From Octopus sinensis (lineage: Eukaryota): a DNA stretch of 28,673 bases. Position 1 is the stretch's first letter, and the number at the start of each line of letters is the position of its first letter. Positions 3,654 to 28,673 of this stretch are shown in pieces. The notes beneath the pieces were generated by a model that was not told the origin of the DNA, did not search any database, and saw only the letters and a list, made by a program, of their open reading frames with translations. The stretch covers positions 1-28,673 of the forward strand of contig NW_021833315.1 in the NCBI RefSeq assembly GCF_006345805.1. Direction: 5' to 3'. The position numbers and the translations under genes were made by a program.

Positions 3654-4358
3654 GAATTCAAACTGTTGCTGACTTCCTACGAAAAATGAATCCAAGTTAA
3701 GCAATCTAAATTTAATTTCATCCCGTACCTACCTACTTATCTATCTGCAATTGATCTGATCTTTTAGTTAGCCCTGTTTTATCTCTATTATTATTGTTAT
3801 GACTTGTGTAATGCAGCCTCACGCCTCGTGTTTTTTAATGTGTACATATAATTCTATAGTTCATCTTAATTATATATCGTTGTCTCATGTCTTGTGTTAA
3901 ATATATATTTAATCTTATAGCTTGCCCCTAATTTTATCGATCCGTCTCACGCCTCGTAGATATAGAATAAATGTATTTATAATTTATAGCTCTTTATCAC
4001 TCACGCTTCTCCCATAGATTAGGCAAAATTTAGGTATTTATACCAACTAATAACTATTTCTCTCCTAAGAAAGGAATGGCTGCCGGTTTTCGCGGTGCAC
4101 CCGCCCTCCCACCCCCTCCACCGGTACAGGAAGTCCTGAATTTTCCATCCTTGTCTCCCTTGTACACTTCAAAGTCTTACGCCACCCCACCTCCTTCCAT
4201 AAAAGGTAGTGGTCATTCATTGCAAGATATGTTTAGTGTTGTGTACGCGGTTTGAACTTAAGTTCTATTGTTTGTCTATGAATCCTGCCAAACGCGAGTT
4301 TTCTTTTCAGGTCCATGACGCTACTAGGGCCAATACCACCCCCACCCCCACCCCCACC

Positions 4359-7300: not shown

Positions 7301-7378
7301 TTAGGTCTCACCAAGGAAATGACTAGAGACCGAGACCTATGGAAGTATGCTGTGCGTGAGAAGACCCGGCAAGACTAG
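4359..7378 (+). pseudogene. RTE EN-RT ORF with lesions; 3' part (5681-7378) is open
   Basis: Frameshifts around 4560-4700 and ~5340; in-frame TAG at 4950-4952 and 5678-5680; ORF 5768..7378 is uninterrupted. Confidence 0.9.
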
Positions 7379-8460
7379 TCAGGCCATAACCCGTGGCCCC
7401 TACCAGGGACGTAGTCAGTCCACCTGTGCATACCTTCCTTCTTGTTACACTTGTGAAGACCTGTTGAGGCAAGTGAAAATCAAAACAAATCAAAATAGAT
7501 GAACATCAATGGAATTTGTATCTTTGTGGTACCAGTGCCGGTGGCACACAAGAAAACCATCCGAACGTGGCTGTAGCCAGTACCGCATTGACTGGCTCCG
7601 TGCTGTGGGCACATAACAAACACCATCCGATCGTGGCCGTTCGCCAGCCTCATCTGGCACCTGTGTCGGTGACACATAAAAATACCATCCGAAGACCCGG
7701 CAAGACTAGTCAGGCCATAACTCGTGGCCCCTACCTGGGACGTAGTCAGTCCACCTGTGCATACCTTCCTTCTTGTGACACTTGTGAAGACCTGTGAGGT
7801 AAGTGAAAATCAAATCAAATCAAACAAAATAGATGAACATCAATGGAATTTGTATCTTTGTGGTACCAGTGCCGGTGGCACACAAGAAAACCATCCGAAC
7901 GTGGCCGTAGCCAGTACCGCATCAACTGGCCTCCTTGCTGTGGGCACGTAACAAACACCATCCGATCGTGGCCGTTCGCCAGCCTCATCTGGCACCTGTG
8001 TCGGTGGCACATAAAAACACCATCCGAAGACCCGGCAAGACTAGTCAGGCCATAACCCGTGGCCCCTACCTGGGACGTAGTCAGTCCACCTGTGCATACC
8101 TTCCTTCTTGTGACACTTGTGAAGACCTGTTGAGGCAAGTGAAAATCAAATCAAATCAAAACAAATCGAAATAGATGAACATCAATGGAATTTGTATCTT
8201 TGTGGTACAAGAAAACCATCCGAACGTGGCCGTAGCCAGTACCGCATCAACTGGCCTCCTTGCTGTGGGCACGTAACAAACACCATCCGATCGTGGCCGT
8301 TCGCCAGCCTCATCTGGCACCTGTGTCGGTGGCACATAAAAACACCATCCGAGCGTGGCCGTCTGCCAGCCTCGTCTGGCACCTGTGTCGGTGGCACATA
8401 AAAAACACCATCTGAGCGTGGCCGTTTGCCAGCCTCATCTGGCACCTGTGTCGGTGGCAC
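7363..8460 (+). repeat. Tandem amplification of the RTE 3' end: three ~330-bp units, then ~58-bp subrepeats
   Basis: AGACCCGGCAAGACTAGTCAGGCCATAAC recurs at ~7363, 7693 and 8028; GCCAGCCTCATCTGGCACCTGTGTCGGTGGCACATAAAA recurs three times in 8300-8465. Confidence 0.93.
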
Positions 8461-8829
8461 ATAAAATCACCCACTACACTCTTGGAGTGGTTGGCGTTAG
8501 GAAGGGCATCCAGCTGTAGAAACTCTGCCAGATCTGACTGGCCTGGTGCAGCCTTCGGGCTCCCCAGACCCCAGTTGAACCGTCCAACCCATGCTAGCAT
8601 GGAAAGTGGACGTTAAATGATGATGTATGTTATATGTGTTTGTAAGTCCTGGTGTTTTTGTTATGTATTTGTCTGAATATTTTTTTGTTGTTGTTATTAG
8701 TATTATTATATCATTGTTATTATTATGTTGTTGTTGTTGTTGTTGTTATTATTATTATTATTGTTTATTATATTATAATTGATATTATTATTTATCATTA
8801 AATTGTTGTTGTTGTTATTATTATTATTA

Positions 8830-9019
8830 GGGCAGCAAGCTGGCAGAATCGTTAGCCCGGCAGGCAAGATGCTTTGGGGTATTTTGTCTGCTACATTCTG
8901 AGTTCCACTGAGCTTGACTTTGCCTTTCGTCCTTTCGGGGTCAATAAAATGAGTACCAGTGAAACACTGTGAAACCTCTCCCCACCAAATTTCAGGTCTT
9001 GTGCCTGTAGTAGAAAGGG
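8830..9019 (+). mobile_element. tRNA-derived SINE, diverged copy of the family with a Deu/Nin-like core
   Basis: Head GGCAGCAAGCTGGCAGAATCGTTAGC, core TTTGCCTTTCGTCCTTTCGGGGTCAATAAAATGAGTACCAG; the superfamily label is recalled, not searched. Confidence 0.75.
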
Positions 9020-9104
9020 TATTGATACTGTTTCTATTGCCAATTGCAAAAAAAAAAAAATTATAAAAAAAACTGGATATAGGTAAATTAAGTAAATGTG
9101 ATTG

Positions 9105-9480
9105 GAGGAGAGATAGAAAAGAATAGAAAAAAAGAGAGAGAAGGACAAAGAGCGAGAGGAGATAGAGAGGGGAGAAAGAAAGAGAGGAGTGACAGGAGGA
9201 GATAGAAAGCGAAAGACAAGAGAGGAAAGAGAAGATAGAGAGGGGGAGAGAGAGAAGATAGAGAAGGGGAGAGAAAAGATAGAGAGGGGGAGAGAGGAGA
9301 TAGAGAAGGGGAGAGAGAATGGGAGGAGATAGAAAGCGAAAGACAAGAGGGGAAAGAGATAGAGAGGGGGAGAGAGGAGATAGAGAAGGGGAGAAAGAAA
9401 GATGAGTGACAGGAGGAGGAGATAGAAAGCGAAAGACAAGAGGGGAGAGGAAGACAGAGAGGGGGAGAGAGAGAAGAGAA
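9105..9480. repeat. GA-rich polypurine low-complexity tract
   Basis: Direct reading; source of ORF 8891..9496. Confidence 0.9.
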
Positions 9481-9550
9481 GCAGTTGAGTTAGCAAGAAA
9501 GTACCTGAGAAAGGTGTGTCAATGAAGCCTCATTCACTTCCTTGAAACTG

Positions 9551-9556
9551 TATAAA
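9551..9556 (+). promoter_or_regulatory. Candidate TATA box of TNF-like copy A
   Basis: TATAAA about 40 nt before the ATG at 9590; conserved in the paralogue at 23020-23025. Confidence 0.5.
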
Positions 9557-9865
9557 GCCGACTTAAATTAAATCTCAAAATACATTACAATGATGCCTTG
9601 TGGAGGTACTGAAGCAGCTGATCAAGGGACTGATCAAAAAAGAAAACATTAGAACTATACTAAAATGCCATTAACAAAAAAGGAAGTACTAATAGTATTA
9701 TGTGTACTAATAGTATTATGTATAGTGATCATGTTGCAGCAGTAACTCAGGTAAATTCTTTTTATTTACTTTCGACAAAGGTGCCGAGTAGGCAGAACGG
9801 TCAGAACTCCACCAACGACTTTTGTTTCCTCATAACTTGCAGTCAAATGGATTTGTTTTACTCTC

Positions 9866-10202
9866 TTTTTTTTTACTCTTTTTTTACTCTTTTACTTGTT
9901 TCAGTCATTTGACTGCGGCCATGCTGAAGCACCACCTTTTTTAGTCGAGCAAATCGACCCCGGGACTTATTCTTTGTAAGTCCAGGACTTATTCTATCAG
10001 TCTCTAAGTGACAGGAGACGTAAACACACCAGCATTGGTTGACAAGCAATGCTAGGGGGACAGACACACACACACATATATATATATACATATATACGAC
10101 AGGCTTCTCTCAGTTTCCATCTACCAAATCTACTCACAAGGCATTGGTCAGCCTGGGGCTATAGCAGAAGACACTTTCCCAAGATGCCATGCAGTGGGAC
10201 TG
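9866..10202 (-). mobile_element. tRNA-derived SINE (octopus-type, family 2), 5' head missing
   Basis: Matches the complete copies at 13597-13959 and 19123-19518; (TTTTACTC)n tail at left. Confidence 0.85.
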
Positions 10203-11100
10203 TTTTTTCCCATTAAGTACTGATAGTCTTTTATTTATTTTCATTTATATATTTGTTTCAGTCATTTAGTATATTACTAAAAGAAAACTAGTCAACAAGC
10301 ACACACACACATACAGTCATATAACACAATTTCTCTTTTACCTGCTTTTGAAATTTCAACTTCTATTCTGTAGTTATATGTAATGTGTACAAGTCCACCA
10401 AAAGTTTATTCCCATTAAGTACTGATAGTCTTTTATTTATTTTCATTTATATATTTGTTTCAGTCATTTAATATATTACTAAAAGAAAACTAGTCAACAA
10501 GCACACACACACATACAGTCATATAACACAATTTCTCTTTTACCTGCTTTTGAAATTTCAACTTCTATTCTGTAGTTATATGTAATGTGTACAAGTCCAC
10601 CAAAAGTTTATTCCCATTAAGTACTGATAGTCTTTTATTTATTTTCATTTATATTGTTTCAGTCATTTAATAAATTACTAAAAGAAAACTAGTCAACAAG
10701 CACACACACACATACAGTCATATAACACAATTTCTCTTTTACCTGCTTTTGAAATTTCAACTTCTATTCTGTAGATATATGTAATGTGTACAAGTCCACC
10801 ACAGTTTTTTTCCCATTAAATACTGATAGTCTTTTTATTATTTTCATTTATATATTTGTTTCAGTCATTTAGTATATTACTAAAAGAAAACTAGTCAACA
10901 AGCACACACACATACAGTAATATGTCACAAACTTCTATTCTGTACATATATGTAATGTGTACGAGTCCTCCAAAGTTTTTTCCCATTAAGTACCAAAAGT
11001 CTGTATTTATTTTCATTTATATATTTGTTTCAGTCATTTAGTATATTACTAAAAGAAAACTAGTCAGCAAGCACACACACATACTGTCATTGTCACAATT
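10203..11100. repeat. ~200-bp tandem repeat, about 4.5 units
   Basis: CCCATTAAGTACTGATAGTC-type marker at ~10209, 10411, 10613, 10812 and 10982. Confidence 0.93.
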
Positions 11101-11519
11101 TGATGTCGATGTCACTTATTTTGGTTTGAAATAAAGCGCTTGATCACTTAATAATCCTAACTTAATCCTGAGCAATGCTGGGCTATACTGATATTATATA
11201 TATATTATATATATTATATATATATATATATATAAAAAACACAGGGAAGATAATCACCTCCACAGCAAATATAACCAGTGTCTTATAGATATCAGAATTA
11301 CACAAAACCATACTAGAATAGTTATAATGTGTCAGGTGGTCTATATTTAATCCCCACTAAGATTATTTTATAAAAGGTGGACACAAAGAAAAAATCCCTT
11401 CTCTGTAATTTTTACAGTCATTGGAGGTTCTTAAATTTTAAAAGATCCCGTTTTTCAAGGGAACATAAACAAACATCTTATATAGTTTTTTGTCTTAGGA
11501 TCTTTCTTCTGATGTTACT

Positions 11520-11750
11520 ACTAAGACCAAGTATTCTATTGAATCAGTAGATAAAAAATTTAATCCAGATACAACAAACATCTTTCAGCCTTCAGACACC
11601 ACAAGAAGAGACATGCAACAACCTTCTCCACATTAATCTGGAAGCTAAAGGATGACAACATCAGCTACAACATTAAATGTATTGGTACAAATATCAAGTC
11701 TGATCCAAGATTATAACAAGACAGTGTCAGTCTTGATACAATCATTAAAA
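11520..11750 (+). mobile_element. Degenerate Penelope (Naiad-type) GIY-YIG remnant
   Basis: One frame reads RYNKHLSAFRHHKKRHATTFSTLIWKLKDDNISYNIK, aligning with RWYAHTHSFRRPDKSNQTTLAAHIWYLKRNSIPFKIT of the element at 1534-1938. Confidence 0.65.
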
Positions 11751-12200
11751 AGGACAGCAATGTGATGTAATTAATACAAACAACAGCTAACACCATCTTA
11801 TCTTAATTTTCTTTTTCTCTCTACTCTAGACACAAAGTAAAGTACCAGATCAGACAACAGATCAGACAACAGATCAGACACCAGATTCTAAATGTAAGTA
11901 CATATTTTGCCATTATTTTGCTTTTTGCATGTTCATAATATCATGACACTGTAACATATTGTAACGTCAATGAAATCACTGAACATCTCCTTAATACACT
12001 ACAGTCTTAAAATAGATAGCAATACCTTCAACATGAAAAAAAACAGACATACTACTAAAGAAATAAATGGCAAAAATACACCATCATTAAATATATGAAA
12101 GAGATGCTGCACAATATTTGACTGGACAATGGCTTTAGATGACCATGTTAAGGCTCACGAAACTACTGTGCGATGTGTGAAATATATGGATGCTTATATA

Positions 12201-12863
12201 TTTCTATACTACCCACAAGGGGCTAAACATACAGGAGACAAAGAAGGACAGATAACAGATTAAGCCAATTACATCGACCCCAATGCAAAACTGGTACTTA
12301 ATTTATCGACCCCAAAAGGATGAAAGGCAAGTCGACCTCAGTGGAATTTGAACTCAGAACGTAACGACAGACGAAATAAACACAAAGCATTTCGCCCGGC
12401 GTGCTAATATTTCTTATTTCTTTACGGCCCACAAGGGGCTAAACATAGAGGGAACAAACAAGGACAGACAAAGGTATTAGTAAGTCGATTACTCGACCCC
12501 AGTGCGAAATTGGTACTTTATTTATCGCCCCGAATGGATGAAAGGCAAAGTCGACCTCGGCAGAATTTGAACTCAGAACGTAACGACAGACGAAATACCA
12601 CAAAGCATTTCGCCCGGCGTGCTAATGTTTCTTATTTCTTTACTGCCACAAGGGGCTAAACATAGAGGGAACACAAAAGACAGACAAAGTATTAATTTGA
12701 TTACATCGACCCCAGTGCGAAATTGGTACTTTATTTATGGACCCCGAAAGGATGAAAGGCAAAGTCGACCTCAGCAGAATTTGAACTCAGAACGTAACGA
12801 CAGACGAAATACCACAAATCATTTCGCCTGGTGTGCTAACGTTTCTGCCACCTCGCCGCCTTA
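12201..12863 (-). mobile_element. Head-to-tail trimer of the Deu/Nin-like SINE (~215-bp units)
   Basis: Three units with a complete head only on the rightmost; direct repeat ATGGATGCTTA at 12186-12196 and 12864-12874 flanks the whole array. Confidence 0.88.
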
Positions 12864-13007
12864 ATGGATGCTTAGTCTTGGCACTCTTTCATTAATGGTT
12901 AATACTTGTTCTCCATATAGATCATTTTCATTATGGTTAATGATGATTGTAAAACAGTTAATATGTTGTATAATTGTTTATTAGATGCTAATCTGAAGTA
13001 TTCAATA

Positions 13008-13314
13008 TCTTTATATATAAAACTGTAGTTGTGTGTGTGTCTGTCTACTCCGATTTAGATTCCTAACTACTCCCACATTTTGCAGTGCAGTTTAAAACCA
13101 AAAGCGGGTATCTTATAGTTGTGATTCATATCGAGCTCTTCTAGGTATTAGTGCGCGTCTACAATGAGTCTACGATTTAAAAAAAAAATTTACCATCATT
13201 TTTTCCCCGTTTTTAGTCCATTTTTCACTCGGTTTTATATAAGGGAAAAAAACTCTAAAATGCTTATATAGTTACTTCCCTACAAACCCAAGCACCGCGG
13301 GGCGATAATGCTAG
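13008..13314 (+). mobile_element. Non-autonomous Helitron
   Basis: A|TC start (ATCTTTATATATAAAA), GC-rich subterminal segment, CTAG|T end; inverted homologue at 18714-19111. Confidence 0.75.
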
Positions 13315-13596
13315 TATGAAATACATCAGGAGGTACTCTTCCTTGAATAGTCTTCTGTTGATATTGAACCTATATTAAAATATATCCTTCTCACTGTCTG
13401 CTTTCTCTCCTTCTTAATTTTCAGTTCACCATTTTCAGTTCTTTTACCTAAACCAAGGGTTCAAAGAGTTGGGTAAGTTTATTTTATACAGATTTATTGC
13501 ACATTTTTTCTCATAATTTGCATTATGCCCATTAAATAACTGAAATTACAGATTTAAGGGTACTTTGCAAGCAAACAAGCATGCAAGCCTCCAACA

Positions 13597-13959
13597 TGCG
13601 GCCATGCTGGAGCACCGCCTTTAGTCGAGGAAATTGACCCCCAGGAGTTATTCTTTGTAAGCCTAGTACTTATTCTATCAGTCTCTTTTGCTGAACCGCT
13701 AAGTTACGGGGACGTAAACACACAAGCATTGGTTGTCAAGCGATGTTGGGGGGACAAACACAGACACAAACATACATGCCACATATATAATATACATATA
13801 TACGACGGGCTTCTTTCAGTTTCCATCTACCAAATCCACTCACAAGGCTTTGGTCGGCCCAAGGCTATAGTAGAAGACACTTGCCCAAGGTGCCACACAG
13901 TGGACTGAACCCGAACTATGTGGTTGGTAAGCGAGCTATTTTACCACACAGCCACTCCT
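13597..13959 (-). mobile_element. tRNA-derived SINE (family 2), nearly complete
   Basis: Minus-strand head AGTGGCTGTGTGGTAA...GGGTTCAGTCC with A/B-box-like motifs; matches 19123-19518. Confidence 0.88.
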
Positions 13960-14383
13960 GCGCCTATATTGCTGTGTGAAAAAAATTAAAATGTATTTAT
14001 TGTTGTTGTTATTATTAATTTCCATTCAGAGGAAATTACTTATTTGCAGTGGATGAAAGATGAGAACCAGCAAGAAGGCGACATAGAATTGATCAATGGA
14101 CCTATATTACTATACCACAAGATGGAGTTTATGACATAAATGTGTAGTGCAACTTTATATTCCAGAAAATACACCTGACTTTCATTTATTCCTAACTTTG
14201 TACACAAGAATGAACAAAGATTGAATCTAAGAAAAAGACTTTACATTCCTCACATATAACAAAACATGAGCCAATAGAATTATCAGTTACACACAAATTG
14301 AAAGCTAATGACAGAATCTTTCTGAAGAGGAACAGGGTAAAATTCATCAGTCCTGACAAGCACAGAAGCCACCTGTCTATCAC

Positions 14384-14543
14384 CGTTTTGAACTAAAATC
14401 TTCCACCAAACCTTAGTCCCAATTTATGTTCCTAACACTAGTTTAATGATAATTAAGTTATTTTACTAAATTCTTTGTTATATTTAAAATAATTGAAAGA
14501 AATATGGAGCATCTCAAACTAAATACAGTAACGAAAGGGTTAA
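14384..14543 (-). mobile_element. Possible piggyBac-like MITE end; left boundary uncertain
   Basis: Minus strand begins TTAA|CCCTTTCGTTAC at 14543, the TTAA/CCC signature; no partner TIR found. Confidence 0.4.
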
Positions 14544-15107
14544 ATCCAATTACCATGAAATACCACTGTGCAGTAAATAATGACAACGCTCGTTCAGTGC
14601 GAGTATCTTCATGTTCAAGGTTTTTTCAGACACAACGACAAATGAATGTATACAGTGAGTATACAGGATTCATAAAGATTTCTGGGAAGAAGAAAGGGTT
14701 TTGAACAACTTGCCATGTTCCATGATAACTTTGAGTTATAGAAATAAATAAAGTCACGAGATTTGCTTCCCACAATACTATGATGAGCTACTGGTGGGAA
14801 ATTAGATATCGAATTCATGTGGCTGGCTCCCTTGTGGTTGCAGTGGATCTTGAATGTATAATGGGGATCTTTCCTAACAGCAGTGATGTTTTTTTTTTGT
14901 TTTGTTTTTGTCATCAAGTTTCTAATACCTGAGGAAATACCACAATCATCATATCATTAATGCAGAAACTTTGAGTTTTGTTTGTGAGTTTCTATAACTA
15001 TACCATGCAATGTATATATAAATTAGTATTGCATGTTGCATGTAAATATATATATATATATATGTATATGTATATGTATATGTATATATATATATGTATG
15101 TATGTGT

Positions 15108-15398
15108 GGAAGCACAATGGCCAAGTGGTTAGGGCAGCGGACTCGCGGTCGTAGGATCGCGGTTTCAATTCCCAGACTGGGCGTTATGAGTGTTCATTGA
15201 GTGAAAACACCTAAATACTCCATGAAGCTCCGGCAGGGGGTGGTGATCCCTGCTGTACTCTTTCGCCACAACTTTCTCCCACTCTTTCTTCTGTTGGCCT
15301 GCTCGCTTAGCAAGTGGGGTGGCGTCATTCAAAGGCTAAAACAATGCGAACGCATTGTGACCAGCGATGTGTAACAACATCTGATGGACTGGTCGGTC
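15108..15398 (+). mobile_element. tRNA-derived SINE (family 3)
   Basis: A box TGGCCAAGTGG and B-box-like GGTTTCAATTCCC with tRNA-like spacing; non-tRNA body follows. Confidence 0.75.
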
Positions 15399-15636
15399 TG
15401 TTTCTTTATTAGCCACACAGGGCTGCACACAGACAGGACAAATTACAAGGTAGAGCTTTTCTTTTGGGGATAAAAAAGGGGGTTTGGTTTTCGATTAAAT
15501 GGGATCGTAAAAGGAAAGAAAGAGGACAAAAAAAGGGGGGGGGATAAAAAAAAAGGAAGAGGAAACAAAATTGATCAATAGGGATCGTTATCACAGAAAT
15601 GTCAATATACACACACAAACATATATATATATGTAT

Positions 15637-15738
15637 GAGCCTGGTGCAGCCATCTGTCTTGCCATTCACAGTCAAACCATCCAACCCATGCCAGCATGGA
15701 ACGTGGATGTTAAACGATGATGATAATGATGATGATGA
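15637..15738 (+). mobile_element. Short RTE-type 3' tail (heavily truncated LINE or RTE-dependent SINE)
   Basis: GCCTGGTGCAGCC...CCAACCCATGCCAGCATGGA...GTTAAACGATGATGA matches 8540-8625. Confidence 0.75.
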
Positions 15739-16030
15739 CACACACACATAATGTTTATTGTATTTTTTTTATTTTTTTTTTTTACTATTATTTTATTATG
15801 AAATTTTGAAATAAAGAGAAATCAAAATGAATTAATGATTTGCCTTATGGAATTTGATGCATCAAATGTGTGATGTGTATACTATGCATGCACACACACA
15901 CACACACACACACATATCTAGAGTAATAAAGTAGTCAGATGTTGGATGATTATATCTATATTTATTTATTTACATCTCATTTAAATTGTTAGCGCTTTAT
16001 ATAGATAGATAGAGATACATACATATATAT

Positions 16031-16121
16031 ACTCTTACTCTTTTACTTGTTTCAGTCATTTGACTGTGGCCATGCTGGAGCACCACCTTTTTAGTCGAGG
16101 AAATCGACCCCAGGACTTATT
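16031..16121 (-). mobile_element. 3' fragment of family 2 SINE, fused to the mariner
   Basis: TTGTTTCAGTCATTTGACTGTGGCCATGCTGGAGCACC matches the SINE 3' ends at ~9897 and (reverse) ~19500. Confidence 0.8.
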
Positions 16122-16913
16122 CATCACTACTCCGTCCTGGTCCCAGAAGACTGTGAGCATGACCTTGCCAGCGGAGGGCTGTACCCTTGCCTTCTTTGGA
16201 GGGGGTGAGTCACGGTGCTTCCACTGCATTGACTGGGCTTTGGCCTCTGGATCATCGTGATGGACCCAGGTTTCATCCTGTGTAATCAGTCTTTTGAAAA
16301 ATTTTGACTCATCTTCTTGGCACATCTCCAAATTCACCCTCGAGCACTCGACGCGTTCTTGCTTCTGGAAAGGCGTGAGCAACCTGGAAATCTATCTGGC
16401 AGACACCTTTTGCATATGCAAATGGTCATGAATGATAGCTTCCACAGACCCGGTACTAATCTTGACCTCATGGGCTATTTGGCGAATAATTATGCGTTGA
16501 TCTTCCAAAATGGCAGCCTCAACTTGACGGACAGATGCCTCATCAATGGCAGAAGGGGCGACCAGATCTGGGAGCTGTTTCCACAGAGTTCTGACCATGT
16601 TTGAATTCACGATGCCAGCGTTTTACAAGGTCATATGATGGGGCATCATCACCATAAGTTACTTTCATTTCATCAAAAGTCTCACGTGGTGTGCGTCCTT
16701 TCAAATACAAAAACCGGATCACTGCTCGACACTCAACAGGCTCCATTTCACACTTGACTCGGTTCAAACACCTGTAAATCAGAAACCACAATTAATTCAG
16801 AGCTGTAATTTGCCACTTACTCTATAGAGATATAAATAATTGCACATGCAAAATTTCAGCTAGATCAAACAACTGCAAGTGGGTCAGAGGCATTACTTAT
16901 TGAACGTCCCTCG
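16122..16913 (-). mobile_element. Mariner transposon, 5' half, pseudogenised
   Basis: TA|CGAGGGACGTTCAATAAG TIR at 16915-16895; ATG at 16746; MEPVECRAVIRFL..GRP, KVSARW, LITQDETWVHH..KVMLTVFWD across three frames; the second and third catalytic Asp and the other TIR are absent. Confidence 0.9.
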
Positions 16914-17046
16914 TATATAAAGATAAAACTCACTTGGAAAAGGGTGCACGGCGTTCGATTATATACTATAAATAATGTATAAATATATGCATATATATAC
17001 ATACATATATGTACATACCTACATATATATGTATATATACATGCAT

Positions 17047-17248
17047 ATATGGGTACAGGACATCAACAAAAAAAATTACCTTTGAAGCGCGGAGTAGATG
17101 AAACAGGGACAACTGATGAAGGGGAATACTCTTTATGGTGCATGTCGCATTTCTCTGTTTAGTTTTTTTGTTGTTTGAAAAAAAGTTCGTTTTCTATGTT
17201 TTCGTTTCTCATTGTGTTCAACGTTATTTTTATGTCCTGTACTCATAT
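17047..17248. repeat. ~200-bp element with 17-bp imperfect terminal inverted repeats in a (TA)n context
   Basis: ATATGGGTACAGGACAT at 17047-17063 versus ATGTCCTGTACTCATAT at 17232-17248. Confidence 0.6.
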
Positions 17249-17351
17249 GTGCTTGTATATATGTGTAGGTATATAAATATATGTATGTATATATGCATAT
17301 ATTTATGAATATATATATATGCATATACTTATATTATTATCATATATATAT

Positions 17352-17385
<34 letters not shown>

Positions 17386-17438
17386 GTGAATCTATATGTA
17401 TGTATGTATATATATATATAGATGATGATGATATATAT

Positions 17439-17550
17439 ATATAAGAGAGCGACCACTATGAGCACTAAAAATAGACCATTGGGCTTCAGCCACATAAAAA
17501 ATGTCTCCAGTGAATATTAGCACAACTACATAGTGGTCGCTCTCTTATAT
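17439..17550. repeat. 112-bp hairpin/MITE with perfect 22-bp inverted ends
   Basis: ATATAAGAGAGCGACCACTATG versus CATAGTGGTCGCTCTCTTATAT. Confidence 0.8.
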
Positions 17551-17658
17551 TTATATATAAAATGTATGAAAATCCGGGTTTCTTATATGCACTAAGTCAC
17601 TAGGTGTTAAATGGATGTACTATTAAATTAGTATAAAAATTTCTCACCCTTATTGGTT

Positions 17659-17695
<37 letters not shown>

Positions 17696-18029
17696 CATAC
17701 ACACACACATACACACACATGTACACACCCAATAATCCCAACAATATAGGAAGGTTCGTTTTAATTTTGATAAGTATATAAAATACAAGTAATTTTCAAA
17801 CCATGATGGACTCGTTTTAGGGTTTCGATGACAGTTTTGAACCCTTTCTTTTCTATTTGGTACCACACACCCTTGCACTTTCTTTTCCATTTTTCCATTG
17901 CCCTTTTGACAATTTTTCTATGCAGCTCAGATCTTTACGCAGAGTTAGAATGTCACCTTCAGTTCCCCACTTCCATCATGGCTCCTACTGTCCACCTATA
18001 TTCCTCTCTTTCTTTCCAACCAGTTCACC

Positions 18030-18445
18030 GGATCTTTTCGGTTTGAACGGCAGTTTTTTAAAATAATGTCCACGTAACGAAACACTTTTAAACTTCATAT
18101 ACTGGTAGAATGTGTTTATAAAACATCTTTTTCTCTTGGCTTTATTGAGAAAATTCTATAGTTTGTAAGATATTTGTTGTTGTTTTTTCTTCAATTTCTG
18201 CAATTTCAACCAATCACTGACGTCTATTGAGGTAAAAAAACATTCTGTGCTGCATGAATATGTCCCTCGTTTAAGAAACAGATTGAGTTTATTTACATTT
18301 GTGAAGAAAAAAAAGATACCCTTCTCCCCCACCCCTAACCCTAAAACAGATTGAAATGCAATAGATCGATACTAGGGTCATAATTATGGGTGACAATTTC
18401 ATATGACACCGCTAGAAAAAACTGCCGTTCAAACCGAAAAGATCC
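18030..18445. mobile_element. MITE with 30-bp perfect TIRs and an 8-bp TSD
   Basis: TIR GGATCTTTTCGGTTTGAACGGCAGTTTTTT; TSD AGTTCACC at 18022-18029 and 18446-18453. Confidence 0.9.
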
Positions 18446-18713
18446 AGTTCACCTACTAAAATTGAAGTGGGTCTGATCAAGTCCCTTGTTTCTGTTTGAT
18501 CTTTTGTCACACTGTGTTTCATAAAATGTTCAGCCAACTTGTGGTAGAGTCAATTGTAGATTCTAACCTTTTTTCTCTTCCCTACCGTATATCTGTGGCA
18601 TTTTTATATGCTCGCCGCAAATACTGTCAGATTTATTCATCCAGCTTTTCCCTTATGTTTAAGTAGTGTATGGTTTTGCCATCAGACCATGTCGGTCATT
18701 TTTTTATATAATA

Positions 18714-19111
18714 CTAGCAGTATCGCCCGTTGTTGCTCGGGTTTGTAAGGGAAATAACTAAATAAGCATTTTTAGAGAGTTATAGCCAAAAAATAGCAAA
18801 AAAATGCATTAGAAATGGAAAAAAAAAATGATGGTAAATTTTTTTTTAAATTGTTGACTCATCGTAGACATTTTTAAAGTTACTTCCCTTATATAATTGC
18901 GATAAAAATGCATTAAAATGGAAAAAAATGATGGTAACTTTTTTTTAAATCATAGACTCATTGTAGATGTGCGCTAATACCCAGAAGGGCTCGATATGAA
19001 TCACGACTATAAGATACCCGGTTTTGGTAAAACTGCACTGCAAAATGTGGGAGTAGTTAGGAATCTAAATCGTAGGAGACAGACACACAACTTCTCTTTT
19101 ATATATAAAGA
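18714..19111 (-). mobile_element. Non-autonomous Helitron
   Basis: Minus strand A|TCTTTATATATAAAAG start, subterminal CCCGAGCAACAACGGG hairpin, CTAG|T end; internal duplication of the ATGGAAAAAAA..ATGATGGTAA segment. Confidence 0.78.
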
Positions 19112-19122
19112 TTTATTTATTG

Positions 19123-19518
19123 AGTGGCTGTGTGGTAAGTAGCTTGCTAACCAACCACATTGTTCCGGGTTCAGTCCCACTGCGTGGCATCTTGGGCAAG
19201 TGTCTTCTGCTATAGCCCCGGGCCAACCAATGCCTTGTGAGTGGATTTGGTTGACGGAAACTGAAAGAAGCCTGTCGTATATATGTATATATATATATAT
19301 ATATGTATGTGTGTTTGTGTGTCTGTGTTTATCCCCCTAGCATTGCTTGATAACCGATGCTGGTGAGTTTACGTCCCCGTCACTTAGCGGTTCGGCAAAA
19401 GAGACCGATAGAATAAGTACTGGGCTTACAAGAATAAGTCCGGGGTCCATTTGCTCGACTAAAAAAGGCGGTGCTCCAGCATGGCCGCAGTCAAATGACT
19501 GAAAGAAGTAAAAGAGAG
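19123..19518 (+). mobile_element. tRNA-derived SINE (family 2), complete
   Basis: tRNA-like head, internal (TA/TG)n, 3' end GCTCCAGCATGGCCGCAGTCAAATGACTGAAA with a purine-rich tail. Confidence 0.9.
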
Positions 19519-19704: not shown

Positions 19705-20663
19705 AGCTGGCAGAATCATTAGCATGCCGTGTGAAATGCTTGGCAGTATTTCGTATGCCGTTACGTTCTGAGATCAAATTCCGTCGAGGTCGACTTAGTC
19801 TTTCATCCTTTCGGGGTCGATAAATTAAGTACCAGTTACGTACTGGGATCAATGTAATCAACTTAATCCCTTTGTCTGTCCTTGTTTGTCCCCTCTATGT
19901 TTAGCCCCTTGTGGGCAATAAAGAAATAGGTATTTCGTCTGCCGTTACGTTCTGAGTTCAAATTCCGCCGAGGTCGACTTTGCCTTTCATCCTTTCGGAG
20001 TCGATAAATTAAGTACCTGTTACGCACTGGGGGCGATGTAATCGACTTAATCCCTTTGTCTGTTCTTGTTTGTCCCCTCTGTGTTTAGCCCCTTGTGGGC
20101 AATAAAGAAATAGGTATTTCGTCTGTTGTTACGTTCTGAGTTCAAATTCCGCCGAGGTCGACTTTGCCTTTCATCCTTTCGGAGTCGATAAATTAAGTAC
20201 CTGTTACGCACTGGGATCAATGTAATCAACTTAATCCCTTTGTCTGTCCTTGTTTGTCCCCTCTATGTTTAGCCCCTGTGGGCAATAAAGAAATAGGTAT
20301 TTCGTCTGTTGTTACATTCTGAGTTCAAATTCTGCCGAGGTCGACTTTGCCTTTCATCCTTTCGGAGTCGATAAATTAAGTACCTGTTACGCACTGGGAT
20401 CAATGTAATCAACTTAATCCCTTTGTCTGTCCTTGTTTGTCCCCTCTATGTTTAGCCCCTTGTGGGCAATAAAGAAATAGGTATTTCGTCTGTTGTTACA
20501 TTCTGAGTTCAAATTCCGCCGAGGTCGACTTTGCCTTTCATCCTTTCGGGGTCGATAAAATAAGTACCTGTTATGCACTGGGGGCGATGTAATCGACTTA
20601 ATCCGTTTGTCTGTCCTTGTTTGTCCCCTCTATGTTTAGCCCCTTGTGGGCAATAAAGAAATA
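19705..20663 (+). mobile_element. Pentameric array of the Deu/Nin-like SINE (~183-bp headless units after one head)
   Basis: GTATTTCGT marker at ~19746, 19930, 20113, 20297 and 20481. Confidence 0.9.
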
Positions 20664-20862
20664 AGAAACGTTAGCAGGCCAGGCGAAATGCTTAGCAATA
20701 TTTCATCCATCTTTACATTCTGAGTTCAAATTCCGCTCAAGTCTACTTTGCCTTACATTCTTCTGGGGTTGATAAATGAAATACAAGTGAATGATCAGGG
20801 TCAATGTCATAAACTGGTTCCCTCCCTACAAATTTCAGACCTTGTGCCTTTGGTAGAAAGCA
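20664..20862 (+). mobile_element. Diverged SINE copy abutting the array
   Basis: AAACGTTAGCAGGCCAGGCGAAATGC head; AAATTTCAGACCTTGTGCC..AGAAAG tail like 8830-9019. Confidence 0.7.
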
Positions 20863-20905
20863 TTATCATCATCATCATCATCATCATCATTATTATTATC
20901 ATTAT

Positions 20906-21456
20906 TGAGTGAGAGAGCAATGCCTGCCATCAAAGTGACACCGGGGTAAAATATACGAAGCCCAATATACCCATCATGACTACCCGTCTGATAAGGGTAC
21001 ACCAGGCACATGCATCACAACCATATGTGCACGACATGATGATCTCATATCAAGATAAACAACACATGACCTTGCAAGTGGGGCCCAGTTAGAATTTTCT
21101 GCTGGTCGAGTAACCCATCCTGCTCAAAAGGTCCCTGAGTAAGGGTTGTTTAAGGATGTTGAACGAAACACCCATGTTTCCTGAGGTGAATTATTCAAAC
21201 CCCAAAGAATCCCTCTCAACACATGGCTATGATGCTCCCCCACTACTTCTGCTCGTGATCAGAGACGCACATATCGTCACCAACTAGAAAACTTGGTCAA
21301 GTGGTTAAAGTCAACAACTGATAAGCAAATCTGGTATTGAGCAGAATATTTGCTGTAGCCCATCCTTTATACCAAGACAAAACAATGTACTGATAACACT
21401 TCCAATCAGTTAAGATCAGAAACCATGAGAACCACTGCCTGGTACTGCATCAGGGC
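20906..21456 (-). mobile_element. Unclassified ~550-bp non-coding repeat between (TAA)n tracts, copy 1
   Basis: Closely similar to 21481-21906; orientation inferred from the shared left end and the right-side truncation of copy 2. Confidence 0.7.
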
Positions 21457-22046: not shown

Positions 22047-22268
22047 TCAGTAGTTTTATTTTTATAGCGTGCTTTCACTTCACTACCGAGCACAGCTCTG
22101 TGTGCCTTGGGTATGTGCTGTGATTTGTTGTGATGCTCTGATGGTTATTGTATGGAAAGTGTTCTGCGTAGGATGTGTGCAGTGCCTACTAGTGCAATTT
22201 TCTGTATGTTATATGTGTTTGTAAGTCCTGGTGTTTTTGTTATGTATTTGTCTGAATATTTTTTTTGT
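22047..22268 (-). mobile_element. 3' end of an R4/Dong-like (RLE-clade) non-LTR retrotransposon
   Basis: Minus strand YSDKYITKTPGLTNTYNIQKIALVGTAHILRRTLSIQ* (stop at 22147-22145), ~100-nt 3' UTR, (AAT)n tail; clade assignment from the recalled QKxALxGTAxILR C-terminus. Confidence 0.7.
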
Positions 22269-23017
22269 TGTTGTTATTAGTATTATTATTATCATTGTTA
22301 TTATTATTATTGTTGTTGTTGTTGTTGTTGTTGTTGTTATTATTATTATTGTTATTATTATTATAATTGTTATTATTATTTATCATTATAATTGTTGTTG
22401 TTGTTATTATTATTATTAGGGCAGCAAGCTGGCAGAATCGTTAGCCCGGCAGGCAAGATGCTTTGGGGTATTTTGTCTGCTACGTTCTGAGTTCCACTGA
22501 GCTTGACTTTGCCTTTCGTCCTTTCGGGCTCAATAAAATGAGTACCAGTGAAACACTGTGAAACCTCTCCCCACCAAATTCCAGGTCTTGCGCCTATAGT
22601 AGAAAGGGTATTGATACTGTTTCTATTGCCAATTGCAAAAAAAAAAAAAATTATAAAAAAACTGGATATAAGTAAATTAAGTAAATGTGATTGGAGGAGA
22701 GATAGAAAAGAATAGAAAAGAAAGAGAGAGAAGGACAAAGAGCGAGAGGAGATAGAGAGGGGAGAAAGAAAGAGAGGAGTGACAGGAAGAGATAGAAGCG
22801 AAAGATTAAGAGAGGAAAGAGAAGATAGAGAGGGGGAGAGAGGAGATAGAAAGGGAGAGAGAAAGAGAGGAGTGACGAGAAGAGATAGAAAGTGAAAGAC
22901 AAGAGGGGAGAGAGAAGATAGAGACGGGGAGAGAGCGCAGTTGAGTTAGTAAGAAAGTACTAGAAAGAGAGGAGTGACAGGAGGTGTGTCAATGAAGTCT
23001 CATTCATGTCATTGCAC

Positions 23018-23025
23018 TATATAAA
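23018..23025 (+). promoter_or_regulatory. Candidate TATA box of TNF-like copy B
   Basis: TATATAAA about 60 nt before the ATG at 23082; conserved with copy A. Confidence 0.5.
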
Positions 23026-23081
23026 GCTGACTAAACTTAATCTCGCTTCATTCGACAAGCTATTGTGAATGATACATTACA

Positions 23082-23251
23082 ATGATGCCTTGTGGAGGTA
23101 CTGGAGGAGCTGATCAAGAGGCTGATGAAAAAAGAAAAGATCGGAAAAAGTCATTAACATCGAAGATAAAGAAAACAAATTATCTATCATCGGTGTACTA
23201 ATAGCAATATTATGTGCAGTGATCATTACTATTGTTGTAGCAGTAACTCAG
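23082..23251 (+). CDS. Exon 1 of a second TNF-like/type II membrane paralogue (one frameshift in an A-run)
   Basis: MMPCGGTGGADQEADEKRKDRKKSLTSKIK(K)/NKLSIIGVLIAILCAVIITIVVAVTQ|GTACAT; adding one A in the run at 23172-23175 opens the frame to a phase-0 donor equivalent to copy A. Confidence 0.62.
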
Positions 23252-23558
23252 GTACATTTTTTTATTTACTTTCGACAAAGGTGCCAAGTAGGCAGAACGG
23301 TCAGCACGCCGGACAAAATGTCTAACAACATTTTGTCCATCCTTATTTTCTGAGTCCAAATGCTTCTGAGGTTGCCTTTACATTCCATCTTTCCGGGGTT
23401 GATAAAACCAGTACCAGTGAAGCGCTGAGTTGATTTAATCGACTATTTCCCTCACCAAAAAATTTCAGGCCTTGTACCAATAATAGAAAAAGGATTATGC
23501 ATTCTTACATATGATAACTCCACCAACTACTTTGTTTCCTCATAACTGGCAGATAAAT

Positions 23559-24287
<729 letters not shown>

Positions 24288-24289
24288 AT

Positions 24290-25582
24290 AATATTATTAG
24301 AGACAAAACCACTATTTTGCAAAACAAACAAGGAAAGACTTAATCAATACATAAAATTTTAATAAATAGTCAAAAAAACCGCCACTACAATCGTTTCTTG
24401 TCTTGATCGACAATCTTCAGGTGGACTTCCAATCTAAAATATCAATATTTTAAAATATAAAAATAATAATTTTAAATAATTAAAGTATGAATGAAAAATA
24501 TAAATATATAATCCATATATAACCTATATATAATCCATATATAATCAATATATAAACAATATATAAACTAAAAAAAACCTATCAACAATTAAATATAAAA
24601 TATAAAATATAAAATATAAAACAAAACAAAAAAATAATAATAATATAATAATAAACTATATATACACCCATCACATATACCTATTATATATAACCATATC
24701 TAACTACATACACTAAATCACACACCTATATATATATCCCTATACATACACATAAAAACGTCTAGGCAACTATAAAACACAATACTTATTCATACTCCCA
24801 CACACACACATACAACCCCCATTCACGCTCTAGAAAACGGACATCACTCAAAACTATGAACGGAGAAATGGAATAAATGGAATTAAAAATTATATTCACT
24901 TGGTAAACGAACACTACTTAAAAATTATGAATGAAACAATGCAATAAAACAACAGACATCGCAAATAGACACAAATTACTACGAATTCCTTAACAAACCT
25001 ACCATGATAAACCAAAACTCATAAAACATATAATGATAAAATCTCCCTTTACTAAACTCTATAACAACCTATATAGCAATCCCCTAACTTAAACATTCAC
25101 ACACAAATACAGACACGTAAACCACACACCCACGACATATACAAATACCCAACCACTTACACATACCAATACATACATATAAACCTCAACATATACTCCA
25201 AAAAACCCACTCACCCCACACAGACAAATAAACACAAAATTATGAATGGATTCTTTTATAAACTACCATGATAAGCTAAAACTCACAAAACAGAAATGAT
25301 AAAACCTCCTTTACTAAACACTATAACATACTTATATAGCAATCCCTTTAACCTATACATTCACACACAATACACACACTAAACCACACACCCATAACAA
25401 ATACAAACACCCACCCCACTCACACACACCCACAAGTACATATAAGCCTCAACATATACACCAAACAAAATTACTTTACCAAGGAACTTAACATATGTAT
25501 AAAAAGTATAACCGCTCTGGAAACGAACATCTTTAAATTAATTAATGGAGAAATGGAATAAATGGAATTAAAAATAATATTC
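24290..25582 (-). mobile_element. Putative Penelope-like terminal region (pseudo-LTR) with diverged subrepeats
   Basis: The minus strand is TG-rich like the 3' region of the element at 586-2926, carries the hammerhead, and ends in (TA)n; no ORF seen. Confidence 0.5.
24382..24424 (-). ncRNA. Minimal type I hammerhead ribozyme, Penelope-type
   Basis: Minus strand CCAC-CUGAAGA-UUGUC(GAUCAA)GACAA-GAAAC-GAUU-GUA|GUGG: both conserved cores, 4-bp stem I, 5-bp stem II, short near-palindromic stem III, GUA cleavage triplet. Confidence 0.78.
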
Positions 25583-28500
25583 ACGTGGCAAAACGAACAC
25601 CACTCAAAAATTATGAATGAAACAATGTAATAAAACAACCAACATCGAAAATAGACAAATTACCACAAATTCCCTAAAAAAACCATGATAAACCAAAACT
25701 CTTAAAAACATATAACGATAAAATCTCCCTTTGCTAAACTCTATAATAAACCTATATAGCAATCCCCCTAACCAAAACATTCACACACAAATACCACACA
25801 CGTAAACCACAGACCCACGACTTATACACATACCTATACTAACTTATAACCCTCAATATACACCAATACCCACCCCTCCCCCACACAGACAAATTAACAC
25901 ATACATCCCAAAACCTAAATAACAAACCCATATACACATTCACACACAAACACACACACACGCAAAACACACACACACAACAGATACATATACTCCCTCA
26001 CATATACGCATATACATACTCACTAAACTCGATATATACAACAATATTTACACACCCACACTCACAGATAAATAAATCATACAACTAAAAACTCACACAC
26101 AATCTCATATACATAACACTCCTATGAAAACAACATTAAATACATCGTAATTAACCAGAATATCAAAAATAACAATATGACATAAGGATAAATAAAATAC
26201 ATACTTACAAGTCAGTTTCAAATTATGAAGTGAAATTAAATTCTTAGCCGTTAAAAAAATCAAACCAAAATTACGTTACCATAGAAATAACTTATGTAAA
26301 AAAAAAAAAAAAAAAGAATACGCGCCATGGAAAGTAAACGTCATTTAAATTATGAATGGAGAAATAGAATAAATAGAACTAAAAACTATATCCACGTGGC
26401 AAACCAACACTACTTAAAAAATTTATTATGAATGGATTCTTTAAAAAACTACCATGAAAAATCATTATATACAATTATGAGCTTTAGCTCACCTAAGCAG
26501 CTTATACAAACAACTTGCAGTAACCCAAACCTATTCTCGATGCCTATCTCACTACTACACTATTCCATTCACAATTCCAAGCAACGCTAGTCCACCACCG
26601 GTTATTCACGTGGCAAAACGAACACCACTCAAAAATTATGAATGAAACAATGCAATAAAACAACCACATCGAAAGTAGACAAATTACCACGAATTCCCTA
26701 AAAAAACCATGATAAACCAAAACTCTTAAAAACATATAACGATAAAATCTCCCTTTGCTAAACTCTATAACAAACCTATATAGCAATCCCCCTAACCTAA
26801 ACATTCACACACAAATACACACACGTAAACCACAGACCCACGATTATACACATACCTATACTAACTTATAAACCTCATATACACCAAAACCCACTCCCTC
26901 CCCACACAGACATATTAACACATACATCCCAAAACCTAAATAACAAACCCATATACACATCACACACAACCACACACACACGCAAAACACACAAACACAA
27001 CAAATACATATACTCCCTCACATATACGCATATACATACTCACTAAACTCGATATATACAACAATTTACACACACCCCACTCATACAGATAAATAAATTA
27101 TACAACTAAAAACTCACACACAATCTCATATACATAAACACTCCTATGAAAACAACATTAAATACATCGTAATTAACCAGAATATCAAAAATAACAATAT
27201 GACATAAGGATAAATAAAATACATACTTACAAGTCATTTCAAATTATGAAGTGAAATTAAATTCTTAGCCGTTAAAAAAATCAAACCAAAATTACGTTAC
27301 CATAGAAATAACTTATGTAAAAAAAAAAAAAAAAAGAATACGCGCCATGGAAAGTAAACGTCATTTAAATTATGATGAGAAATAGAATAAATAGAACTAA
27401 AAACTATATCCACGTGGCAAACCAACACTACTTAAAAAAAATTTATTATGAATGGATTCTTTAAAAAACTACCATGAAAAATCATTATATACAATTATGA
27501 GCTTTAGCTCACCTAAGCAGCTCTACAACAACTTGCAGTAACCCAAACCTATTCTCGATGCCTATCTCCACTACTACACTATTCCATTCACAATTCCAAG
27601 CAACGCTAGTCCACCACCCGGTATTCACGTGGCAAAACGAACACCACTCAAAAATTATGAATGAAACAATGCAATAAAAAACAAATCGAAAGTAGACAAA
27701 TTACCACGAATTCCTAAAAAACCATGATAAACCAAAACTCTTAAAAACATATAACGATAAAATCTCCCTTTGCTAAACTCTATAACAAACCTATATAGCA
27801 ATCCCCCTAACCTAAACATTCACACACAAATACACACACGTAAACCACAGACCCACGATTATACACATACCTATACTAACTTATAAACCTCAATATACAC
27901 CAAAACCCACTCCCTCCCCACACAGACATATTAACACATACATCCAAACCTAAATAACAAACCCATATACACATTCACACACCCACACACACACACGCAA
28001 AACACACAAACACAACAAATACATATACTCCCTCACATATACGCATATACATACTCACTAAACTCGATATATACAACAATTTTACACACCCACACTCATA
28101 CAGATAAATAAATATACAACTAAAAACTCACACACAATCTCATATACATAAACACTCCTATGAAAACAATAAATACATCGTAATATAACCAGAATATCAA
28201 AAATAACATATGACATAAGGATAAATAAAAACATACTTACAAGTCAGTTTCAAATTATGAAGTGAAATTAAATTCTTAGCCGTTAAAAAAATCAAACCAA
28301 AATTACGTTACCATAGAAATAACTTATGTAAAAAAAAAAAAAAAAAAGAATACGCGCCATGGAAAGTAAACGTCATTTAAATTATGAATGGAGAAATAGA
28401 ATAAATAGAACTAAAAACTATATCCACGTGGCAAACCAACACTACTTAAAAAAATTTATTATGAATGGATTCTTTAAAAAACTACCATGAAAAATCATTA

Positions 28501-28673
28501 TATACAATTATGAGCTTTAGCTCACCTAAGCAGCTCTAACAAACAACTTGCAGTAACCCAAACCTATTCTCGATGCCTATCTCACTACTACACTATTCCA
28601 TTCACAATTCCAAGCAACGCTAGTCCACCACCCGGTTATTCACGTGGCAAAACGAACACCACTCAAAAAAATT
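25583..28673. repeat. ~1.02-kb tandem repeat, three units plus, running off the window
   Basis: CACGTGGCAAAACGAACACCACTCAAAAA at ~25583, 26607, 27626 and 28641; poly-A + GAATACGCGCCATGG at ~26316, 27336 and 28348. Confidence 0.95.

Follow-up and report, generated by a model that had tools for sequence, protein, structure and literature searches.

A paralogous first exon in a tandem cluster of a probable TNF-fold ligand family of Octopus

We analyzed a stretch of 28,673 nucleotides from Octopus sinensis (contig NW_021833315.1 of assembly GCF_006345805.1, forward strand), in the following called the window, and in particular an exon-like piece at positions 23018-23253 which we call copy B. A reading made from the sequence alone had taken this piece for a second, nearly intact paralogue in a tandem cluster of TNF-like genes. 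Paralogy and tandem arrangement are both borne out: judged by its sequence and its homologues, an Octopus gene family certainly has in this segment a genuine paralogue of its first exon, complete with a putative TATA promoter and 5′ untranslated region (5′UTR). The family itself probably encodes ligands with a TNF fold. Copy B as sequenced carries a frameshift, and we somewhat favor the view that it is an orphan or recently decayed first exon.

Copy B is homologous to an annotated first exon

On the forward strand a TATA box (TATATAAAG, 23018-23026) precedes an ATGATG start at 23082-23087. The frame opened by this start (frame 0) reads MMPCGGTGGADQEADEKRKDRKKSLTSKIKK..., a tail rich in lysine and arginine, continues with TNYLSSVY and ends with a TAA stop at 23199-23201. 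As written the frame therefore closes at codon 40, ahead of the hydrophobic segment, and exon 1 is not open throughout. The frame one base on reads ...ENKLSIIGVLIAILCAVIITIVVAVTQ and holds the hydrophobic run LSIIGVLIAILCAVIITIVVAV (23180-23245, 22 residues, mean Kyte-Doolittle value 3.18), which is followed by a CAG|GT splice donor (23249-23251|23252-23253). The TATA box, the double start codon, the basic patch and the hydrophobic stretch that had been seen in the letters are all present. The features of unit B and the DNA behind it are:

22203..22935, + strand: upstream block of unit B, a copy of 8624-9480, with TTA/TTG microsatellite, short interspersed nuclear element (SINE), A-run and GA-rich satellite
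22936..23081, + strand: putative promoter and 5′UTR of exon 1B, from the TATA box at 23018-23026 and homology to other first exons; the promoter function is predicted from the sequence
23082..23251, + strand: exon 1B, 170 nt, with start codons, basic cytoplasmic tail and signal-anchor segment (phmmer, tblastn, MAFFT)
23252..23561, + strand: start of intron 1 of copy B, with donor GTACAT and a SINE at about 23275-23490; last homology to the gene unit
23559..28673, no strand: satellite-rich DNA after unit B: 37-nt satellite repeats, an (AT)n tract and three copies of a unit of about 1020 nt (Tandem Repeats Finder)

A full HMMER search with the joined 58-residue peptide of copy B gave exactly one match among 1.84 billion representatives. 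This protein, P0121 (XP_036354635.1, "uncharacterized protein LOC118761074" of O. sinensis, 210 residues), is 83% identical to the B peptide over residues 1-57 with an E-value of 8.9e-12 (phmmer). We regard this homology match as the decisive test and therefore conclude that copy B is more than a chance arrangement of letters. P0121 starts with an N-terminus like that of B, after which a membrane helix and a short stalk lead to a C-terminal domain of about 130 residues; in the reverse direction it matches exon 1B in two pieces lying in two frames (tblastn). A word-indexed protein search with the same joined peptide returned no candidate. This is a false negative, P0121 having about ten 5-residue words in common with the B peptide (e.g., KDRKK to TSKIK), and negatives from that index carry little weight. 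The truncated 39-residue open reading frame (ORF) of B has no record in an exact look-up, and Rfam and tRNA scans found nothing.

We aligned eleven copies of exon 1 with MAFFT: two from the window (copy B and an upstream copy A), one each from the O. sinensis contigs VCDQ01004704.1 and VCDQ01004715.1, and seven from the Octopus vulgaris sequence OX597837.1. Copy B groups with the four intact first exons. Its coding sequence (CDS) is 94-95.5% identical to the first exons of VCDQ01004704.1, VCDQ01004715.1 and one O. vulgaris copy, and its promoter and 5′UTR are 90-94% identical to those of LOC118761074, LOC115227685 and two O. vulgaris copies, with 91-94% for the two O. sinensis genes taken alone. 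TATAAAG is invariant in the six copies having a start codon. Copy B thus has promoter, coding part and the position of the phase-0 donor in common with the first exons of the family, whose annotated members LOC118761074 and LOC115227685 are both listed as "uncharacterized protein".

The differences from these intact copies are few. Copy B has a 9-nt insertion, which is also found in copy A, and a 3-nt insertion, both in frame, and one frame-breaking 1-nt deletion in the CDS between 23171 and 23172. In addition its donor reads GTACAT with a C at position +4, in contrast to GTAAAT in all ten other copies, and exons 2-4 are not linked to it in the window. At the deletion site AAAGGAAAAC of the intact copies corresponds to AAAGAAAAC (AAAG.AAAAC) in B, i.e., a G of a GG dinucleotide is missing. 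The sequence-only reading had named a missing A in a homopolymer as the only lesion. A single 1-nt CDS frameshift is indeed what the alignment gives, but the lost nucleotide is a G, and a further A is lost in the 5′UTR (TTACAAATG to TTACAATG), a change common to B and copy A. As a result of this 5′UTR deletion the upstream ORF of B is lengthened: in the intact copies it has 5 codons and ends on the start codon, whereas in B it runs from an out-of-frame ATG at 23069 over 14 codons (23069-23113) and overlaps the start. Similarly, the CAG|GT junction supposed to be the same as in copy A is there, but the donor following it deviates at +4. Copy B is the youngest-looking of the spare exon-1 copies.

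Compared with copy A, the CDS of B is only 72.5% identical, whereas the first 60 nt of the intron are 93% and promoter plus 5′UTR 81% identical, as had been noticed in the letters for a diverged membrane segment between alignable flanks. The stretch following the donor of B is 95-96.5% identical to seven stretches of O. vulgaris OX597837.1 and 90% identical to VCDQ01004704.1 and VCDQ01004715.1. When the window was compared with itself (blastn), 22203-22916 matched 8624-9334 with 93.4% identity, and 9251-9804 matched 22714-23304 with 75.9%. The duplicated block comprises in both copies the microsatellite, a SINE, the GA-rich satellite, the exon-like piece and a further SINE. The upstream block of unit B is also found 5′ of exon 1 in VCDQ01004704.1, VCDQ01004715.1 and O. 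vulgaris OX597837.1.

The family and its four-exon gene

A search with P0121 retrieved only three further proteins, all from Octopus:

LOC115227685, O. sinensis: 94% identical to P0121
O. vulgaris family protein: 221 residues
LOC115229433, O. sinensis: 146 residues

In the databases searched the family consists of these four proteins from O. sinensis and O. vulgaris, in line with the lineage-specific expansion that had been suspected. By tblastn and inspection of the junctions, all of which have canonical AG/GT sites, the gene has four exons, as had been guessed:

E1: basic cytoplasmic tail and signal-anchor helix, running from the start to ...AVTQ and closed by a GT donor in phase 0
E2: 40 nt, KQSKVQVQTPASK; stalk
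E3: 48 nt; stalk
E4: about 128 codons to the stop; most of the all-beta domain

P0121-P0123 have a tail rich in lysine and arginine, behind it a hydrophobic helix of some 22 residues (modeled helix 19-54) and then the beta domain, which is the order of a type II membrane protein. In copy B tail and anchor lie in different frames. In the literature we found no paper on a cephalopod TNF-like cluster and none in which these loci are named.

A probable TNF fold

The TNF-like character proposed for the family finds support at the level of the predicted fold and fails at the level of the Pfam profile. P0121 gave no TNF (PF00229) match against Pfam-A (hmmscan, E up to 10) and hence does not belong to the TNF homology domain (THD) by profile, and the concatenated plus-strand ORFs of 11100-19400, which include exon 4 of copy A, yielded neither a TNF nor any other Pfam domain. 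With a profile of the four family proteins against all PDB sequences the only match of the ectodomain was lymphotoxin-alpha, which at E 1.5 is not significant; its alignment covers the canonical LQW...G..L.nG...IP.DG.Y strands. Two AlphaFold2 models, the first covering the full-length protein and the second the ectodomain alone, were made from an alignment of 4 close sequences and have low overall confidence (mean predicted local distance difference test scores of 53 and 59.5) with core blocks at 65-84. Both show an all-beta domain with eight long strands in the order expected for the THD strands A to H. Foldseek searches of the PDB with these two low-confidence models placed ligands of the TNF superfamily (TNFSF) on top, with E-values of 2e-5 to 3e-4 and template modeling scores of 0.36-0.62. 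TL1A, 4-1BBL, RANKL, TNF-alpha, EDA, CD40L and TRAIL are among the top matches, and the top 50 are mostly TNFSF chains. C1q and cerebellin domains and a few unrelated sandwiches follow lower in the lists. Since there is no Pfam match, while the weak models match TNFSF ligands best, we use the term TNF-like in the sense of a predicted fold only.

On this basis we think it likely that the family comprises TNF-fold ligands, and an intact member would be a type II membrane ligand, presumably trimeric. With vertebrate TNF, LTA, TL1A, 4-1BBL, RANKL, EDA and CD40L, with Drosophila Eiger and with bivalve TNFs such as PmTNF (PMC12367993) the family has in common a short basic N-terminal tail, one signal-anchor helix and a predicted C-terminal all-beta domain of about 145 residues, the LQW...G..L..G...IP.DG.Y motif in the lymphotoxin-alpha alignment, the tandem arrangement and the four-exon layout. 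Vertebrate TNF and LTA are four-exon genes whose last exon codes for most of the domain. The family differs from these ligands by an identity of only 12-20% to solved THDs, by its Octopus-only relatives and by a ratio of nonsynonymous to synonymous substitution rates (dN/dS) of about 0.6-4 in exon 4, and copy B differs in being exon 1 only.

It is unlikely, in our judgment, that the ectodomain lies outside the TNF superfamily, being either another jelly-roll (C1q-like or a lineage-specific fold) or the product of a family evolving without constraint. The missing Pfam match, the low model confidence, the C1q, cerebellin and unrelated beta-sandwich domains among the Foldseek matches and the lack of a sign of purifying selection in exon 4 argue for it, and the first two of these also count against our own reading of a TNF fold. 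The C1q-domain proteins (C1QL2, cerebellins) have the same jelly-roll superfold, and several of them are matched with E about 1e-4. These proteins, however, are secreted via a cleaved signal peptide and usually have a collagen-like or cysteine-rich N-terminal part serving oligomerization. The Octopus family has neither of these and instead shows a signal anchor after a basic tail of 30 residues and a short stalk, with no Gly-X-Y repeats. Type II topology, the dominance of TNF ligands in both Foldseek lists, the THD strand order, lymphotoxin-alpha as the sole sequence match of the ectodomain, on just the canonical LxW...IPxDGxY strands, and the four-exon layout speak for the TNF fold.

Tandem arrangement in O. 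sinensis and O. vulgaris

Positions 1-24310 of the window align with the O. sinensis contig VCDQ01008637.1 (locus positions 315-24616) at 99.24% identity, and the window therefore is the locus of LOC115229433 in another sequence version of the species. Unit A (9590-14396) contains all four exons:

9590..9752, + strand: exon 1A (copy A), degenerate: the reading ends at TAG after 20 codons, the hydrophobic segment carries indels, and start and donor are in different frames
11830..11893, + strand: exon 2A (stalk), from tblastn of the family protein P0124, with AG and GTAAGT junctions; expanded by DQTT repeats
13425..13472, + strand: exon 3A, from tblastn and junctions
14030..14396, + strand: exon 4A, from tblastn; most of the TNF-like domain, in three frames in the window

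The RefSeq model LOC115229433 starts with MCTNSIMYSDHVAAVTQ at an internal ATG (window 9700) inside exon 1A, and because of this internal start it has no membrane anchor. Copy B lies 8.7 kb past the stop codon of unit A, and as it follows a complete unit the tandem arrangement is real. Copy A is chimeric: its 5′ end is B-like, and its middle part is of a type which we call A-type. O. vulgaris has five further A-type copies, there with neither TATA box nor ATG; being found in both species, the variant predates their split. Copy A is accordingly an old, degenerate variant of exon 1 and not the better reference for judging copy B.

The O. vulgaris locus (on chromosome OX597837.1; locus positions 8479-38731) shows the same elements in greater number. 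Its order is two intact E1, three A-type E1, a frame-broken set E2-E4, two A-type E1 and an intact set E2-E4, so that seven copies of exon 1 stand against two sets of exons 2-4. The paralogue count that had been suggested earlier thus stands at four proteins and, in O. vulgaris, these seven and two. The two intact first exons (locus positions 8500 and 10022) are 1.5 kb apart and have a TATA box each. The annotated O. vulgaris model spans 28.7 kb and splices an upstream intact first exon across the proximal unit to the distal exons. The A-type copies there are spaced about 2.3-2.7 kb, and the proximal exon 4 is frame-broken. The proximal O. vulgaris unit matches unit A of the window, 3′ flank included, in collinear order (96.7-97.5%), and because of this collinearity the A-type copy at locus 31145-31297, which is dead, is the positional orthologue of B; on the intron side it is also the best match (96.5%).

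The family units lie head to tail. The block of exon 1, which comprises promoter and GA-rich satellite and has a SINE on either side, has been copied more often than exons 2-4, presumably via unequal crossing-over.

Downstream of copy B we searched for the remainder of the gene, as had been proposed, and the search came out negative: no exons 2-4 were found after 23260 in the remaining 5.4 kb of the window (tblastn with P0121 and P0124). When 23251-28673 was compared with the loci in VCDQ01004704.1, OX597837.1 and VCDQ01004715.1 (blastn), all matches stopped at 23561, 310 nt into the intron, and the satellites beyond this point are absent from every related unit compared. The contig VCDQ01008637.1 has no gene annotation at B.

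The frameshift and the quality of the sequence

VCDQ01008637.1 is 100% identical to the window over 22940-23320 and contains the same deletion in B. We rejected this contig as an independent confirmation of the frameshift, as the two versions have zero differences over 1.6 kb (22700-24310), microsatellites and satellites included. The frameshift of B is therefore not independently confirmed. Neither form of the frameshift site had a match in the metagenome contigs scanned.

Over the 24.3 kb aligned the two versions differ by 44 mismatches and 86 gap openings, and this excess of gaps points to sequencing noise and not to polymorphism. Relative to the contig 39 stretches are absent from the window, single A residues in 19 cases, and relative to the window 47 are absent from the contig. 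Both versions err inside the gene, nine or more of the differences being located in exons 3A and 4A of the window and one in the contig. Exon 3A has three A residues fewer in the window than in VCDQ01008637.1, and exon 4A of the window has five 1-nt deletions; conversely, a 1-nt deletion in VCDQ01008637.1 truncates its own model at ...SVTPN, where the window reads on. When both versions are combined, exon 4A is in frame to ...SITVLN*. The differences cluster at 13-15 kb and 17-19 kb, and there are none at 5-7 kb or at 22.7-24.3 kb, which looks like uneven polishing of a long-read consensus. With such 1-nt indel noise between versions, pseudogene calls based on frameshifts are unsafe in this region.

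Selection

The dN/dS comparison that had been suggested gave pairwise Nei-Gojobori values of about 0.6-4 for exon 4, derived from very few changes, and hence no signal of purifying selection. When exon 1 of B is compared by eye with that of VCDQ01004715.1, and over the first 19 codons with that of copy A, nearly every difference changes an amino acid. The O. sinensis contigs VCDQ01004704.1 and VCDQ01004715.1, which are probably haplotigs, are 99.4% identical over 19.8 kb, while the encoded proteins are only 94% identical. Mismatches between them number 12/633 in coding and 61/19175 in noncoding positions, a six-fold coding enrichment (Fisher p 3e-6), and exon 4 has eight nonsynonymous changes and one synonymous change. 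This coding excess fits diversifying selection or patchy gene conversion and not strong purifying selection. As there is no sign of the latter, sequence conservation is no argument for a functional copy B.

Orphan exon, working exon or variable exon

The comparative evidence leans towards an orphan duplicated exon, and by a slight preference we regard copy B as an orphan or recently decayed first exon that would be nonfunctional. The 1-nt deletion would end translation at codon 40, short of the membrane segment, the donor GTACAT would be weakened, and the end of the gene-unit homology 310 nt into the intron would leave B with no further exons close by. Rather doubtful to us is the opposite reading, in which B serves one more member of the family as its working first exon, the missing G is an assembly error, and exons 2-4 lie past the window behind an intron 1 inflated by satellites. 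A number of our observations nevertheless weigh in its favor and against a decayed B. Apart from the one frame-breaking lesion the indels are in frame (+9, +3), and the TATA box and the 5′UTR are conserved as expected of a working exon. 1-nt deletions are abundant in the window assembly, with at least eight window deletions in exons 3A and 4A where VCDQ01008637.1 reads in frame, and the same deletion of B in that contig, though it counts against an error, does not come from an independent witness. The O. vulgaris gene model has an intron 1 of 26 kb containing pseudo-exons, so that exons 2-4 of B could lie past the window, and synteny with O. vulgaris predicts a second set E2-E4 downstream. On the other side, the deletion is in a GG dinucleotide and not in a long homopolymer, the donor deviates at +4, the match to the unit breaks off at 23561, the database proteins searched include neither a B-type protein nor a gene model for B, and the positional orthologue in O. 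vulgaris is dead.

The O. vulgaris layout, with promoter-bearing first exons repeated upstream of common exons, also resembles the variable first exons of the protocadherin alpha/gamma and UGT1A loci. B could in that case be one variable exon among alternative first exons that have their own promoters and are spliced to shared exons 2-4, and the locus would combine one TNF-fold ectodomain with differing cytoplasmic tails and anchors, its coding exons being under diversifying selection. The two closely spaced intact first exons of O. vulgaris, the model in which the second one is joined over 26 kb to the distal set of exons 2-4 and the six-fold coding enrichment between nearly identical contigs agree with such an arrangement. 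We nonetheless hold both the variable-first-exon locus and this role of B for quite improbable: most of the extra copies are dead (no TATA box, no ATG, internal stops), the long O. vulgaris model may be an annotation artifact, B itself is frame-broken, and the variable part would be tail and anchor and not the ectodomain. A chance ORF in AT-rich repeat DNA is virtually refuted. The AT-rich and repeat-laden window has many stop-free runs of some 40 codons and many hydrophobic runs encoded by repeats, and yet a hydrophobic run as strong as that of B appeared in 0 of 100 Markov-1 simulations of 28.7 kb for each of three compositions; above all the chance explanation fails on the match to the annotated protein, on the nucleotide identity of 94-95% to annotated first exons and on the matching promoter and donor. 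A fragment carried by a transposon was also considered and is not favored, since all copies seen in the loci compared, in the two species, lie within the collinear tandem cluster.

Taken alone, copy B is of minor weight, as a further copy of the first exon whose function is doubtful. The family behind it is labeled only "uncharacterized protein" and is invisible to Pfam, and cephalopod immune signaling is poorly charted. If it is a type II family with a TNF fold, as seems probable, the O. vulgaris/O. sinensis lineage would gain candidate cytokine-like ligands of its own. The family shows tandem duplication, over-replicated first exons and an excess of amino-acid-changing differences, and it offers a small and tractable case in which the birth and death of genes in an immune-type array can be followed. 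Users of the genome should note that such short genes can be made or broken by 1-nt indel noise in the available O. sinensis sequence, and pseudogene calls at this locus need read-level support.

Other elements in the window

A non-LTR (long terminal repeat) retrotransposon lies at 4209-7378 (+ strand). Its part 4209-4589 has a weak endonuclease/exonuclease/phosphatase match, and its 536-residue ORF contains a reverse transcriptase domain (E 8e-33) and a weak, below-cut-off PHD/C1-type zinc finger (E about 0.008). The best relatives of this ORF are unnamed metagenome ORFs (73-75%), and the named ones are from cnidarians, bivalves and amphioxus (51-58%); the protein search gave metazoan matches with no cephalopod on top, and the ORF of this long interspersed nuclear element had no record in an exact look-up. 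A related retrotransposon copy is found in the VCDQ01004704.1 locus (19784-21387) and is absent from VCDQ01004715.1 and from the window. Remnants of a mariner/Mos1-type transposase in several frames are located at 16056-16791 (- strand; HTH_48 E 4e-10, Transposase_1 E 2e-11).

Tandem arrays were listed at 7360-8352, 10202-11098, 12199-12846, 19746-20663, 23559-24249 and 25677-28456. The units and copy numbers are:

335 nt, 3 copies
202 nt, 3.6 copies
214 nt, 3 copies
184 nt, 5 copies
37-nt satellite, 18 copies, flanking the (AT)n tract
about 1020 nt, 3 copies, to the window end

The public contig VCDQ01008637.1 appears to end inside the array with the unit of about 1020 nt, and the 184-nt array looks like head-to-tail copies of a SINE.

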